Of a stretch of 64,000 nucleotides of DNA, positions 34,781-44,753 are shown in pieces. This DNA comes from Podarcis filfolensis (lineage: Eukaryota), in the NCBI GenBank assembly GCA_964270895.1, contig OZ185437.1; one strand, 5' to 3'. Every line of letters begins with the position of its first letter. Position 1 is the first letter of the stretch. Below the pieces are notes generated by a model. That model did not search any database. It had not been told where the DNA came from and worked only from the letters and a program-made list of their open reading frames with translations. The position numbers and the translations under genes were made by a program.

Positions 34781-35282
34781 TTTGTAGACAATCCTCATCC
34801 TACCAGTCTACTTGTTCCCTAGCTTTAATCCTGATCTCAAAGCTGCCATACCCAATATGGACACCCCCACATCTCTTACATCTTCAGACAGACACAACCT
34901 ACCCCTGAGCAGTGCCTCACGATTTGCTAGATTGAAATTTGAAAAAAAAGAAGAAGCCAGGGAACAATCTCATGCTTTGCATTAAAAAATAATGCTCTGA
35001 AATAAGGGGAAATATTTTAAAATATATTCCTAAAAGTAATGAGCAGGCACAACTAGCCTAATTTGGAGAATAAGCCTCAGGAAAAAGAGTTATTTGAAAG
35101 ATTCAGGATGAAGCTAGTTTTTTTGTGAGGGATTCCAAACATGAATATGTGTGTCTTTGTGAGTGTGCTGAGGAGAGAAGGTTTGCAGAGGAGAGACAGA
35201 GGAGACTTTGTGCATGGTGTTGGCTCTGACACAGCTCAGCCTGTTCACTCTCTCTGTTTTTCATTTCTGCCTTCACAGGAAC

Positions 35283-35333
35283 ATGCAGTGGCTCCTCATC
35301 CCCACCATCCTTATAATCACTTATGCTCAACAG
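35283..35333 (+). CDS. CCN6: CCN6 coding exon 1 (signal peptide)
   Basis: MQWLLIPTILIITYAQQ then CAG|GTAAGT, phase 0; in-frame upstream ATG at 35214. Confidence 0.85.
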
Positions 35334-36984: not shown

Positions 36985-37894
36985 GATTAGGACCACAGTG
37001 GGGACACACAAAGAAAGGGTGAAAGCCCTCTACCCTCATGCCAGGGTCCTGGTGCAAATCAGGGCCTTCCAATGCTTGTTGTTCACTTTTAAGATGTGAT
37101 CTACAATTGCGAACTGTGTGAATAGTTTCAGGTTTAGTTGGTCCTAAACTACACCTGGCAATTGAAGCAGGAAGCTGGCTAAACACTGTTAGCCAAGCCC
37201 CACATCGAAAGCTGTTGTTGTAAGGATACTAAGATTGCCCCATAGCCCTGAGGATATTTATAGTTGTATAGTTTCTGTGTCACTGTACCATCTGGGTACA
37301 GTGCCATTTACTTGACTCGATGGAGATGTGTGTGTGTGCATGTGTACATGGTGTGTATGTAGATACCTCTGACTTTTGCCTAGCTAGAATGTAGACTGCT
37401 GTACAAAGGGAGGCAGTCATACCTGACCAGACTGAATACATGCCCCTGTGTGTCTGGGAGGCTGGGAATCCTCCTGGCCGGGCATTAGATCCAACAGACA
37501 AATGCATTATAGAATTTTCTTTAAAAATGTTTAGGGGTACTGTCATTTTGACTCAAGAAAACCACCCTTTTATAGTTCAAATCGGGGAAAATAAATACAG
37601 TAAATGGCCCAAAATACAAAGATTCACAAAATGTTTAAGGGTATGCGTCCCCTGCATCCCCCCAGAAAAAAGCACTGCATTATACAGTACCAATTAGGAC
37701 AGAGTTAAACAAGATTTTCTTTACAAGGGAAAATATTTTGTTGTTGTATTGTATATAACTGTAGCTTGCCACGATCTCTTGCGAAAGGGGAAATAAATAT
37801 AAATAACAGCAGTGTGTTTGTGTGTATACACACGCACATTTGCCATTTTTGTTGGATGTTTTCCAGCTCTCAGGTAAGTCCACCTATATGAAAG

Positions 37895-38180
37895 CTTTCT
37901 TGCAGGGTGCAAACCAACAGGCAGAAGCAAGGAAAGCCTGGAGAAAAATCTGCAGAGGTTCATCAACGCAGAGAGCTATGCCACTGGCCCTGCAGATGCC
38001 CAGTGGTACCAACCTGCAGTCCCGGGGTGAGCCTGGTGAAGGATGGCTGCGGATGCTGCAAGATGTGTGCCAAGCAATCAGGGGAAACATGTAATGAAGC
38101 TGAGGTCTGTGACCCCCACAAGGGGCTATACTGCGACTACTCTGCAGATAAGCCTAGGTATGAAAATGGAGTATGTGCAT
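37895..38180 (+). CDS. CCN6: CCN6 coding exon 2 (IGFBP module); acceptor uncertain
   Basis: LSCRVQ...CHWPCRCP...[16 protein letters not shown]...[12 protein letters not shown]...GVCA; donor GCAT|GTAAGT; the only frame-preserving acceptor nearby is the weak AAAG at 37891-37894. Confidence 0.85.
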
Positions 38181-38810: not shown

Positions 38811-39050
38811 ATATGATAGCAGTGGGTTGTGAGCTCAATGGGGTGCACTATGTCAATGGCTACAACTTCCAGCCCACTCCTCTTTACAAATGTCTGTGTG
38901 TGAATGGTGCAATTGGATGTACACCTGTCTTCATCTCAAAGCCAGCACCTAATGAATGTGCAGCACCGAAGAGCAGAAAGAAATCTGGACAATCCAAATG
39001 TGTTTCAGGACAGCAGGAGCAGCAGTCAACCAGTTACAGATTAATGTCAG
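38811..39050 (+). CDS. CCN6: CCN6 coding exon 3 (VWC module)
   Basis: TTCCCAG|AT ATG ATA GCA...GCELNGVHYVNGYNFQPTPLYKCLCVNGAIGCTP...; TCAG|GTAGGC. Confidence 0.95.
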
Positions 39051-40793
39051 GTAGGCAAGGCTAGACTGATATCTTCTTCATGATAGATTTATTTTTTTAA
39101 AGAGGTGTTTCCTTATTATTTGAGGCAGGTAAAGTTATTTGCATTTCCCCTTTTTAAATAGGTAACAAAAACTTCTGGTACTTGTAGGGCAGCTTTATAA
39201 TTGAATTTATAATTGTTAGATTGGGGTAGAGTAGGTGCTTGTCTCTTCTTGTAGGTCACTGTTAGGTTCCGGGGCAGGATTGGGAAACCTTTGTGTCAAG
39301 AGCCTCAGAGGTAATCTTTTGGGGGCTCTGTGCCAGAGCCACAACTTTAGTGCTGCCACTCCTTTTTCTCTCTTTATGCCCCTTTGTCTCTCTCCCCTCT
39401 CCACCCCATAAGCTGCCAGAAAGAATGGGAACAACTTGCTTTGGGAGGACTGTTTCCCCCCCCCTCCTTCCATGACTCCATTTGTTTGAGCTTTCTCCAT
39501 TCTTCCCTCTATCACCCCAACCGCATGAAGTTACACCGAGGGCCACATGCAGGACCCAGAATGGATGGCCTTCCAGATTTTTCAGCTACATTATCAATAT
39601 AGTCAGAAGTACACCAGCCAACCTAGGGGTCCAAAACAATATGACTCCTGTAACATAGAAAAGCTTTTCAGAAGATATCAACACACATTGGATGTAGAAC
39701 ATGCCCTGTAATGTTGCTTGCAAGATATTAGGGCAAGACTAGGCAGCAAGTAGAGAAAAGTTGAAAAAGACAGATTAGACAAAACACACAGTTGCAATCT
39801 TACTTCTATGAAAATGCTGAGAACCTCCAAAACAATCCAAGCAGCTTATGATTTATACACTATTAATGCATGGTTTGCATGCTCTCACAATTAATTTTGA
39901 AAGCTAAGGGTTTTTTCCTTCCGTATCTTGCCGAACAAGCTTAATTTTAATATTTTACTATCTTTCCTTCTTTCTGCATGCACTGCCCTAGTTAACAAAT
40001 CCCTGTTGTAAAAGCAATGAAATTATTTTATGTACAACAAATATATATATAAACCCACAGCTTTGTAACCTTGCTTTATTTATTTCAGATCTGTGCCAGG
40101 CTTTTAAATTTGCTTCCTGCGCTGTGATTTTTAAGCTGCTGCTGCTTACTTCCCAGGTACCCTCATATATCTGCTCTGTCCTCTTGAACTGTGCACATTT
40201 CAAATCTGGTCAGTCATCCTGTAGAACTCCCATCATCAGGATTTGCTATGTGGAGATTGTAAAAAGCAGGTTTAAGATCTATAGCTATTAATGCTCCGAC
40301 TCTTTGGAATGTGGGGATAAAAGCCCTCAACCCCAATCCTCTTAAAGAAAACTAATTTGATACAGAACTTTCAGCATATGTATGTTGATAAAGCCTGGCC
40401 TAGGTGCCCCATATCTACTTTAACACAGGTATTTCACATAGCCAGTCTATTTTGTAAGAACTTTTTCAGGAAAATGTCTTGCTTTCTAGGGCAGACTTGA
40501 GAGTCATGGCATTAAGAAACAAACAAGCAGCATTACCAAGATATAAAATCAAATCTTTGGAGACTGAGGTGCTAAATTCCTATAAAAGTTAATTGAACTT
40601 GTGGCAGCTATTTCTTAAAATCTAAACCCAATTTCTGTAATTTAAGCAAGTAAAATCCAAAAGGTGATCCTGGCAACCTGGCATGCTTAATTCTCATGTT
40701 CCATGCTATTTTGGGGTTGCCTTAGTAGAACTGATCTGAATTAAACGGCTTAAAAATATTTGGCTCAAGATGTAATATAATTCTGTCTTCTAG

Positions 40794-40987
40794 CTTTCAG
40801 AAGTGTACCGCTTGTTTTAAAGAAGAAGTGCCTGGTTCAAGCAACTCCTTGGACACCTTGTTCCCGAACCTGTGGCATGGGAATATCTGACAGAGTGACC
40901 AATGAAAACAGTAAATGTGAAATAAGGAAGGAAAAGAGACTGTGCTACATTCAACCATGCCAAGCAAAATTTCCAAAGAGCATAAAG
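40794..40987 (+). CDS. CCN6: CCN6 coding exon 4 (TSP1 module)
   Basis: CTTCTAG|CT TTC...[45 protein letters not shown]...SIK|GTAAAC. Confidence 0.95.
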
Positions 40988-41974: not shown

Positions 41975-42256
41975 ATACCTAAAGGAAAAACATGCCGACC
42001 TACATTCCAGCTTGCCAAGGCAGAGAAACTAGTATTTTCTGGATGCACAAGTACACAAAGATATAGACCAACCTTTTGTGGAATCTGCCTGGACAAGAGA
42101 TGTTGCATACCCAACAAATCTGTAATGATTACAGTGCAGTTTGATTGTCCAAAGGAAGGCTCCTTTAAGTGGAAGTTGATGTGGATTACATCTTGTGTTT
42201 GTCAGAAGACATGCAATGATCCAGGAAACATATTTTCTGAACTCAAACTCTTGTAA
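41975..42256 (+). CDS. CCN6: CCN6 coding exon 5 (CT cystine knot) to stop
   Basis: TTTCAAG|[13 protein letters not shown]...[26 protein letters not shown]...FSELKLL*; the five exons total 1053 nt = 350 aa. Confidence 0.97.
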
Positions 42257-44145: not shown

Positions 44146-44304
44146 CTACATTGCTATCTTCAGTCTTGGTGGATCTATAGCAGGTCCACAGTTAGCAGCA
44201 TCTAGCTGATTATAGTCTTCTATTAAATCAGACAAAGATGAAAGCGCTTCAGGGAAATAGGACTGATCCATCCCATCAATATGTAGGTAATGGTGAAGGT
44301 GAGC
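44146..44304 (-). CDS. TUBE1: TUBE1 exon 12 (to stop)
   Basis: cag|AHLHHYLHIDGMDQSYFPEALSSLSDLIEDYNQLDAANCGPAIDPPRLKIAM*. Confidence 0.95.
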   Translation of the reverse strand, partial: AHLHHYLHIDGMDQSYFPEALSSLSDLIEDYNQLDAANCGPAIDPPRLKIAM

Positions 44305-44753
44305 CTGCAAGAATAGATGTTACATTAGTCACATGATTTACAGGAACATTGAACAAAATGAATTCAAGTCTTCTTCCAATTCCATGTGCAAAACTGGTTA
44401 TAACTTTAATGTAAAGATCTGTTGTGATAATTTTTGGATTAAGGGTTAACAACAACAATAATAACAAGAATATCACGCACAATCTATCCAGCATGTGTGT
44501 ACTGTAGTTGGGTATGTGAGGGATTTGACTTCCTACTTTCGCTCTCTTTTCCTCCAGTTCATGTCCATGTGCATTTGCACCACAGTCACCCAACCATTTA
44601 TTTAACTCCAAACTGTATTATAACCCTTTGTAAGTCCAAGTGAAGCATGTGGAGAGGCTACCATTAGTGCAGCATATTTCCACATACCACTTGTAATATA
44701 AGTACAACTGAACTACTTATAATGACAATATTACTTCTCATTATGTGGCATAC

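Follow-up and report, generated by a model that had tools for sequence, protein, structure and literature searches.

Isoforms that lack a module are known among the CCN proteins, for instance WISP1v without the VWC module and CCN5 without the CT module. The present analysis concerns CCN6 (WISP3), loss of which causes progressive pseudorheumatoid dysplasia in humans, in a 64,000-nucleotide stretch of contig OZ185437.1 of the lizard Podarcis filfolensis (assembly GCA_964270895.1). This whole 64-kb stretch is called the window, and all positions are counted from its first letter. For the human gene, the variant c.49-763G>T has been described, which creates a pseudoexon in the intron preceding the IGFBP exon; in the numbering used there, c.49 is the first base of the IGFBP exon, which is consistent with the same exon 1/exon 2 junction as in the lizard (PMC8819188). 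In regulated microexons of the SRRM3/4 class, the pyrimidine tract is typically separated from the AG by a UGC enhancer (bioRxiv 10.1101/2024.09.17.613571). The AG of a 3' splice site is found by a linear search downstream from the branch point, whereby AGs very near the branch point are bypassed (PMC1431707).

At the end of CCN6 intron 1, a preliminary description made from the letters of the window had pointed out a candidate microexon of 7 nucleotides (nt), which would replace the IGFBP exon in frame, and had proposed a regulated or even dominant isoform. The feature is best explained as a lineage-specific cryptic donor beside an atypical, conserved 3' splice site and does not support that main inference. 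The donor at 37874 is probably cryptic or a decoy, used to a minor extent at most, and full-length CCN6 spliced through AAG/CTT (slashes mark splice junctions) probably stays the functional product.

The end of CCN6 intron 1 in lacertids and other squamates

Orthologous DNA of Lacerta agilis, Podarcis raffonei, P. muralis, Zootoca, Rhineura, Elgaria, Anolis, Hemicordylus and Sphaerodactylus was compared with the window, and exon 2 was located by tblastn in each orthologous locus. Two Logan contigs, one snake-like (L001) and one of a non-squamate sauropsid (L002), were added; both were assigned by peptide only. The following features at the end of intron 1 and the start of exon 2 were considered.

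37857 to 37894, + strand: 38-nt block that closes intron 1, conserved across the sampled squamates, 26 of 38 columns being invariant in 11 squamates
37813 to 37864, + strand: AG-free stretch rich in pyrimidines and GT, of which only the last ~25 nt are conserved outside lacertids
37865 to 37866, + strand: upstream AG (ttttccAG), the would-be microexon acceptor; used alone, it makes exon 2 28 nt longer, with a stop at 38092
37867 to 37873, + strand: candidate microexon CTCTCAG, 7 nt, invariant in the sampled squamates except for G at 37867 in Anolis; holds A37872
37874 to 37879, + strand: GTAAGT, which together with the preceding CAG matches 9 of 9 letters of the 5' splice-site consensus CAG/GTAAGT (U1-pairing); holds A37877
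37893 to 37894, + strand: AG of the weak productive acceptor gaaAG/C, at the position used by the RefSeq models of Lacerta, Podarcis, Elgaria and Anolis (cAG in Anolis)
37895 to 37905, + strand: exonic pyrimidine tract plus CAG, CTTTCTTGCAG, a second, out-of-frame acceptor 11 nt downstream

All coordinates of the preliminary description were confirmed, namely ttttccAG/CTCTCAG/GTAAGT at 37859-37879, the AG-free stretch and the gap of 21 nt between the start of GTAAGT and the exon 2 acceptor (37874-37894), after which the letters read gaaAG/CTTTCTTGCAG/GGTGCAA. Splice sites were rated by counting pyrimidines and matches to the consensus, not by MaxEnt scores. Between -20 and -3, the upstream AG at 37866 has 13 pyrimidines of 18, and the productive AAG at 37894 has 9 of 18 with an A at -3; the in-frame IGFBP acceptor is indeed weak, as had been remarked before.

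Across squamates, the block follows the pattern ...TTTyCAGcTCTCAG-N-T-N-AG-y-CcACCTrTrTGAmAG/. Compared with the non-lacertid squamates, the window showed a mean identity of 89% over the final 38 nt of intron 1; exon 2 reached 83% over its first 38 nt, and the 3' ends of introns 2-4 reached 63-74%, which places the intron 1 block above the neighbouring intron ends. Folding of the RNA from 37845 to 37925 gave no structure beyond that of shuffled sequences (z = 0.02); hence, the conserved block is not a hairpin. On the exonic side, the pyrimidine tract and AG at the start of exon 2 are kept in all sampled squamates and in the non-squamate contig despite differing residues (LSCR, LSSR, FLCR), the pattern being YAG everywhere except in Zootoca, whose tract contains one A. 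Other tetrapod proteins read FSHS, FFYR or FCCR, i.e., the same residues vary further at the protein level, to which this comparison refers. The reach of the block into mammals is judged solely from read-through open reading frame (ORF) calls (MK/FCCRVQ). The conserved block is preceded by a short imperfect GT/CA run (tgtgtttgtgtgtatacacacgcaca) at 37813-37838 (+ strand), whose length varies among lacertids and which is absent in the other squamates.

The letter at 37874 separates lacertids from all others. G was found in five of five lacertids (window, P. raffonei, P. muralis, L. agilis, Zootoca) and only there, and A in seven of seven others (Rhineura, Elgaria, Anolis, Hemicordylus, Sphaerodactylus, the snake contig and the non-squamate contig). 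Non-lacertids read CAG/ATAAGT (Elgaria, Anolis, Hemicordylus) or, for the hexamer, ATAAGC (the gecko Sphaerodactylus), ATTAGT (Rhineura) and ATGAGT (snake); within this variation, [A/G]T[A/T/G]AG[T/C], a U-n-A is retained throughout. The ancestral CAG/ATAAGT was thus one A>G transition short of a perfect U1 site, and the distribution of the letters among the sampled species places this transition on the lacertid stem. The expectation that CCAG/CTCTCAG/GTAAG would be conserved across squamates held for CCAG/CTCTCAG and failed for the GT donor, which is limited to the five lacertids. Since the block predates the donor, the conserved CCAG/CTCTCAG is not evidence for a microexon.

The same comparison bears on an assembly indel hiding an ordinary exon 2 that starts in frame at 37867, for which only the apparent weakness of the AAG acceptor speaks. 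Four further, independent assemblies of lacertids carry the same letters, ten squamate assemblies besides the window share tatatgaaag/CTTTCTTGCAGG and its in-frame TGA (37889), with 1-3 differing bases each in snake, Anolis, Elgaria, Rhineura and Zootoca, and the orthologous proteins from salamander to mammals begin the exon at the equivalent F/L codon. Such an indel, which had been named earlier as a possible cause of the arrangement, is therefore refuted. Two further candidates were discarded: an in-frame extension of exon 2 from 37867 is ruled out by the conserved TGA at 37889, and the ATG at 37888 is ruled out as a start codon, being out of frame in squamates.

Judged by motif, distance and conservation, the 38-nt block most likely acts as a branch-point and 3' splice-site module for exon 2. 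The branch-point candidates are A37872 in CUCUCAG (CUCUCAA in the non-squamate contig) and A37877 in a U-n-A with a fixed U and A, in which the letters between and around them differ among species. For either adenosine, 37894 is the nearest AG at a distance of 12 nt or more downstream (22 and 17 nt away), and the AGs at 37873 and 37878 stand at the branch adenosine or at most 6 nt downstream of it; the used AG is thus preceded by a U-n-A at a distance within 15-40 nt, and no AG between the two is usable. A branch adenosine at A37872 or A37877 would leave the weak productive AAG at 37894 as the first usable AG, and the better pyrimidine tract, which begins directly inside the exon (CTTTCTTGC) and ends in the out-of-frame CAG/G at 37905, may form part of the 3' splice site. 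In lacertids, the A>G change at 37874 turned the ancestral CAG/ATAAGT into the perfect U1 site CAG/GTAAGT, and the new donor would yield at most a minor mRNA of exon 1, the 7 nt and exon 3, in frame by a 1-in-3 chance. The U1-pairing stretch, 37871-37879, covers both branch-point candidates, such that U1 and U2 would compete for shared letters. The acceptor choice at exon 2 is delicate.

A bolder form of this idea holds that the lacertid A>G change made the conserved branch-point block a U1 site, that U1 and U2 compete for the same nine letters and that, whenever U1 wins, the IGFBP exon is swapped for the 7-nt microexon, giving a lineage-specific secreted CCN6; we consider this improbable. Some points nevertheless weigh against a cryptic donor beside a branch-point module. 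The donor is maximal in strength, its G is fixed in all five lacertids, and the tract of the AG at 37866 is better than that of the productive AAG (13 against 9 pyrimidines); by its letters, the 37874 donor may possibly be used in lacertid transcripts. The block is conserved over more positions, e.g., TTTYCAG upstream, than a branch point alone needs. Moreover, four RefSeq models use CAG/G rather than AAG, and acceptor choice is accordingly less simple than a strict first-AG rule.

Use of the donor: reading frames, annotated junctions and constraint

The five-exon coding sequence (CDS) rebuilt by script gives the normal product of 350 amino acids (AA). Joining exon 1, the 7 nt and exons 3-5 gives 257 AA, reading ...YAQQLSDMIAVGC..., without stops, whereas plain skipping of exon 2 leads to a frameshift and immediate stops; this frame arithmetic agrees with that of the preliminary description. 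The same holds for the stops reached from the other AGs (TAA at 38092 from 37866 and 37905, TGA at 37889 from 37873) and for the gap of 21 nt, which is too short for an intron and renders the 7-nt exon and exon 2 mutually exclusive at sequence level. For the detection of the different mRNAs, the predicted junction strings are GCTCAACAG+CTCTCAG+ATATGATAG (microexon), GCTCAACAG+CTTTCTTGC (productive), GCTCAACAG+GGTGCAAAC (acceptor at +11) and GCTCAACAG+CTCTCAGGTAAG (acceptor at -28).

A real lacertid-specific alternative microexon would require that U1 wins and that exon 1, 37867-37873 and exon 3 are joined to encode a secreted protein of 257 AA (signal peptide, VWC, TSP1, CT) at a meaningful level in some tissue. 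The layout of a cassette microexon is present, with a pyrimidine tract and a good AG acceptor on one side and the perfect donor CAG/GTAAGT on the other side of a very short exon, 7 nt apart. The spacing is that of mutually exclusive exons, 21 nt being too little for splicing from the microexon to exon 2, and both branch-point candidates fall within the U1 footprint; the predicted product reads in frame and stop-free, and the G is fixed in five lacertid assemblies. A strong 5' splice site and a pyrimidine tract at some distance from the AG are also features of known microexons (bioRxiv 10.1101/2024.09.17.613571). In the window, CAGGTAAGT occurs three times on the + strand and twice on the - strand, one of these being the real exon 1 donor, and a pyrimidine tract with CAG followed after 3-30 nt by AGGTAAGT occurs at one place per strand; the rarity of this pattern is explained by an ancestral match of 8 of 9 letters (CAGATAAGT) and one transition. 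Against a microexon, the donor is missing in every non-lacertid squamate sampled, although the surrounding block is equally conserved there, so that the acceptor is shared by all sampled squamates and the donor GT by five lacertids only. An SRRM4-type UGC between the tract and the AG is absent, the sole UGC (37841-37843) lying 23-25 nt upstream of the AG and before the tract. Furthermore, 7 nt is not a multiple of three and the exon is in frame only through the joint loss of exon 2, a 1-in-3 accident. No microexon isoform is found among the lacertid RefSeq, Ensembl or UniRef entries, and the literature on an IGFBP-less CCN6 splice variant yielded nothing relevant. Likewise, no protein of ~257 or 280 AA containing AQQLSDMIAVGC was present in the 11-member lacertid CCN6 cluster or in the hit lists, where no exact look-up of the 257-AA sequence was made. 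Gene prediction and read aligners perform poorly on 7-nt exons, and the missing annotated isoform is therefore weak evidence, which counts against a merely cryptic donor. On balance, a microexon of this kind is unlikely.

The letters YnCAG/GTAAGT at 37867-37879 would also fit a recursive, zero-length exon, in which exon 1, likewise ending in CAG, is joined at the AG at 37873, regenerates CAG/GTAAGT and is spliced onward. Intron 1, however, is not a long intron, being only ~2.5 kb in length; the regenerated donor would lie 21 nt from the exon 2 acceptor, which is too close, hence the only onward product would skip exon 2 with a shifted frame, and the GT is absent outside lacertids. This explanation is very improbable.

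Annotated proteins show which junctions are used by gene models. The junction AQQ/LSCRVQ, corresponding to the AAG at 37894, is found in X1 and X2 of L. agilis, in both versions of P. muralis and in P. raffonei. Elgaria, Anolis, Sceloporus, Pogona and snakes have QQ/LSC, PQ/LSC, QQ/FSC or QQ/LSF, and a transcript-based salamander entry reads MQQ/FFYRVQ. In the RefSeq models of Zootoca, Rhineura, Hemicordylus and Sphaerodactylus, exon 1 is followed by the out-of-frame CAG/G junction (37905), and the signal peptide is lost; in the Zootoca model, the CDS begins at an out-of-frame ATG within an otherwise intact exon 1. Either the acceptor at 37905 is really much used, or these models are mis-joined.

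The Zootoca model is also what a regulatory decoy might produce, in which U1 is bound at 37874 without splicing and shifts the choice among the AAG, the CAG at 37866 and the CAG at 37905, thereby tuning the share of productive CCN6 in lacertids. The U1-pairing stretch overlaps both branch-point candidates, and three of the four nearby AGs lead to premature stops. However, Rhineura, Hemicordylus and Sphaerodactylus, which have no GT, also have CAG/G models, thus the choice is independent of the G, and the decoy is proposed from the letters and not from expression. We give it only a slim chance.

RefSeq CCN6 isoforms X2/X3 of turtle and alligator, with 277 AA, lack the IGFBP module and are joined ...L/DMIAVGC in the phase of the microexon. 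They use an alternative donor within exon 2, CCTAG/GTATGA (window 38158/38159, + strand), 22 nt before the normal donor, and are read from an out-of-frame ATG (window 38043) without a signal peptide. They are not precedents for the microexon.

Selection on the IGFBP exon was assessed among the five lacertids. The ratio of non-synonymous to synonymous substitution rates (dN/dS) of exon 2 is ~0.19, compared to 0.49 (exon 3), 0.03 (exon 4) and 0.26 (exon 5), and exon 2 has retained all of its cysteines. These values indicate that the IGFBP exon is still under purifying selection in lacertids since the G arose, which also speaks against a real microexon. A regulated or even dominant isoform, as previously proposed, does not agree with a donor confined to lacertids, annotated proteins joined at AQQ/LSCRVQ and an exon 2 dN/dS of 0.19. 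Because the donor is lineage-restricted, the annotated junctions use the AAG, the isoform is unrecorded and the IGFBP exon is constrained, a dominant or ancient IGFBP-less isoform is disfavoured; a dominant one is unlikely. The preferred reading, a cryptic or decoy donor of at most minor use beside a branch-point module, fits these data.

If the donor were used, it would be a natural case of one base change creating a module-swapping microexon, with U1 and U2 acting as a toggle on the letters they share. The comparison among species gives the more solid result: the 3' splice site of CCN6 exon 2 is odd and deeply conserved, combining a weak AAG, an exonic tract, an out-of-frame CAG at +11 and an intronic block that beats coding conservation. 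Owing to this odd acceptor layout, several squamate RefSeq models lose the signal peptide, and annotators should be cautious at the CCN6 exon 1/exon 2 junction.

Gene model of CCN6 and its surroundings

For the identification of the gene, the exon 2 peptide was searched against protein-cluster representatives, followed by word-index searches, which led to named CCN6/WISP3 proteins in many vertebrates. The window peptide is near-identical to CCN6 of Lacerta agilis, Podarcis muralis and P. raffonei; exon 2 has 97-99% identity with Podarcis and Lacerta CCN6, and the 8-kb gene region has 95-96% identity with the two Podarcis loci (P. muralis, P. raffonei), which marks the window as DNA of a Podarcis-like lacertid. 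PF00219, PF19035 and PF00007 are present in the named CCN6 orthologues. The window gene has one module per exon, in the order signal peptide, IGFBP, VWC, TSP1 and CT, as expected for a CCN6/WISP3 orthologue. Its exons were placed by the rebuilt CDS as follows.

35283 to 35333, + strand: coding exon 1, signal peptide MQWLLIPTILIITYAQQ; ATG at 35283, phase 0 end, donor CAACAG/gtaagt
37895 to 38180, + strand: exon 2, IGFBP module, 286 nt; phase 1 end, donor CAT/GTAAGT; the peptide includes CHWPC
38811 to 39050, + strand: exon 3, VWC module; phase 1 entry, with ...T/AT and ...G/AT both in frame
40794 to 40987, + strand: exon 4, TSP1 module; from the rebuilt CDS and the cross-species comparison
41975 to 42256, + strand: exon 5, CT or cystine-knot module, stop codon included

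The RefSeq proteins of Lacerta and Podarcis share the signal peptide of exon 1 without differences. In P. muralis, the newer protein version reads ILIILIITY in the signal peptide and has four extra residues (ILII duplicated) compared to the older version and the window, which is a polymorphism or an assembly difference. An upstream in-frame ATG (window 35214-35282, + strand) prepends MVLALTQLSLFTLSVFHFCLHRN to MQWLL... and is taken by RefSeq as the first codon of L. agilis X2 and of the P. raffonei protein (373 AA). This region overlaps a possible acceptor, ttcacag/GAAC, which is used in the P. muralis model, and may be 5' untranslated region rather than coding.

Between exons 3 and 4, an alternative exon of 68 nt was seen at window 40089-40156 (+ strand; tttcag/ATCTGTGCC...CTTCCCAG/gtaccc), which shifts the frame and ends the protein early. 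Its tail is annotated in L. agilis X1, Sceloporus and Sphaerodactylus, and in the tuatara with a diverged end. It looks like a conserved truncating or poison exon leading to a product of IGFBP and VWC only.

About 2 kb past the CCN6 stop, an ORF piece ending in ...AHLHHYLHIDGMDQSYFPEALSSLSDLIEDYNQLD...PRLKIAM lies at window 44146-44310 on the - strand. A tubulin-family gene (PF00091/PF03953) is predicted directly downstream of CCN6, on the minus strand, in Zootoca and Hemicordylus, and the ORF piece is probably the TUBE1 neighbour.

The locus and known splicing systems

Vertebrate microexons (3-27 nt, including the SRRM3/4-dependent neural set) resemble the CCN6 candidate in the very short exon, the consensus-strength donor and the upstream pyrimidine tract with an AG-free zone. 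They differ in that the CCN6 candidate is known from sequence alone, its donor is of lacertid age, there is no UGC before the AG, its length is not a multiple of three and inclusion of the 7 nt demands the loss of a 286-nt exon. The 277-AA CCN6 X2 of turtle and alligator resembles the would-be microexon product by the absent IGFBP module and the same phase at ...L/DMIAVGC, but arises from the within-exon donor and the out-of-frame ATG, with neither signal peptide nor microexon.

Sterically mutually exclusive exons, such as exons 2 and 3 of alpha-tropomyosin with their distant branch points (cf. PMC1431707, PMC7969005), are matched by the CCN6 donor, which lies 21 nt from the next exon's acceptor and overlaps its branch point/acceptor region. 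Unlike those, the CCN6 pair are not homologous alternatives (7 versus 286 nt), and use of the 7-nt exon is unproven. Recursive splice sites, i.e., AG/GTAAGT ratchet points, have the same juxtaposition as CTCTCAG/GTAAGT, but CCN6 intron 1 is short, and no usable acceptor lies onward by which the normal mRNA could be regained.

Dual-AG 3' splice sites, which are read at the second splicing step, provide a parallel for the conserved acceptor. Drosophila Sxl exon 3 with SPF45 (Lallena 2002, as presented in PMC9984181) and adjacent 3' sites (PMC4484395) share with CCN6 the order of proximal AG, tract and distal AG (AAG/CTTTCTTGCAG/G). In CCN6, the proximal AG gives the productive mRNA, and gene models use both AGs across squamates. 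CCN6 differs in its spacing of 11 nt and in the frameshift that follows from use of the distal AG, the likeness being one of layout.

For the donor itself, the pseudoexon created by a single base in human CCN6 (PMC8819188) lies in the same intron of the same gene family member. As in such cases, an A>G at +1 turned a match of 8 of 9 letters into a full donor beside an existing AG and tract. The lacertid change differs from a disease allele in being fixed in a whole lizard family and in having a possible product that is in frame.

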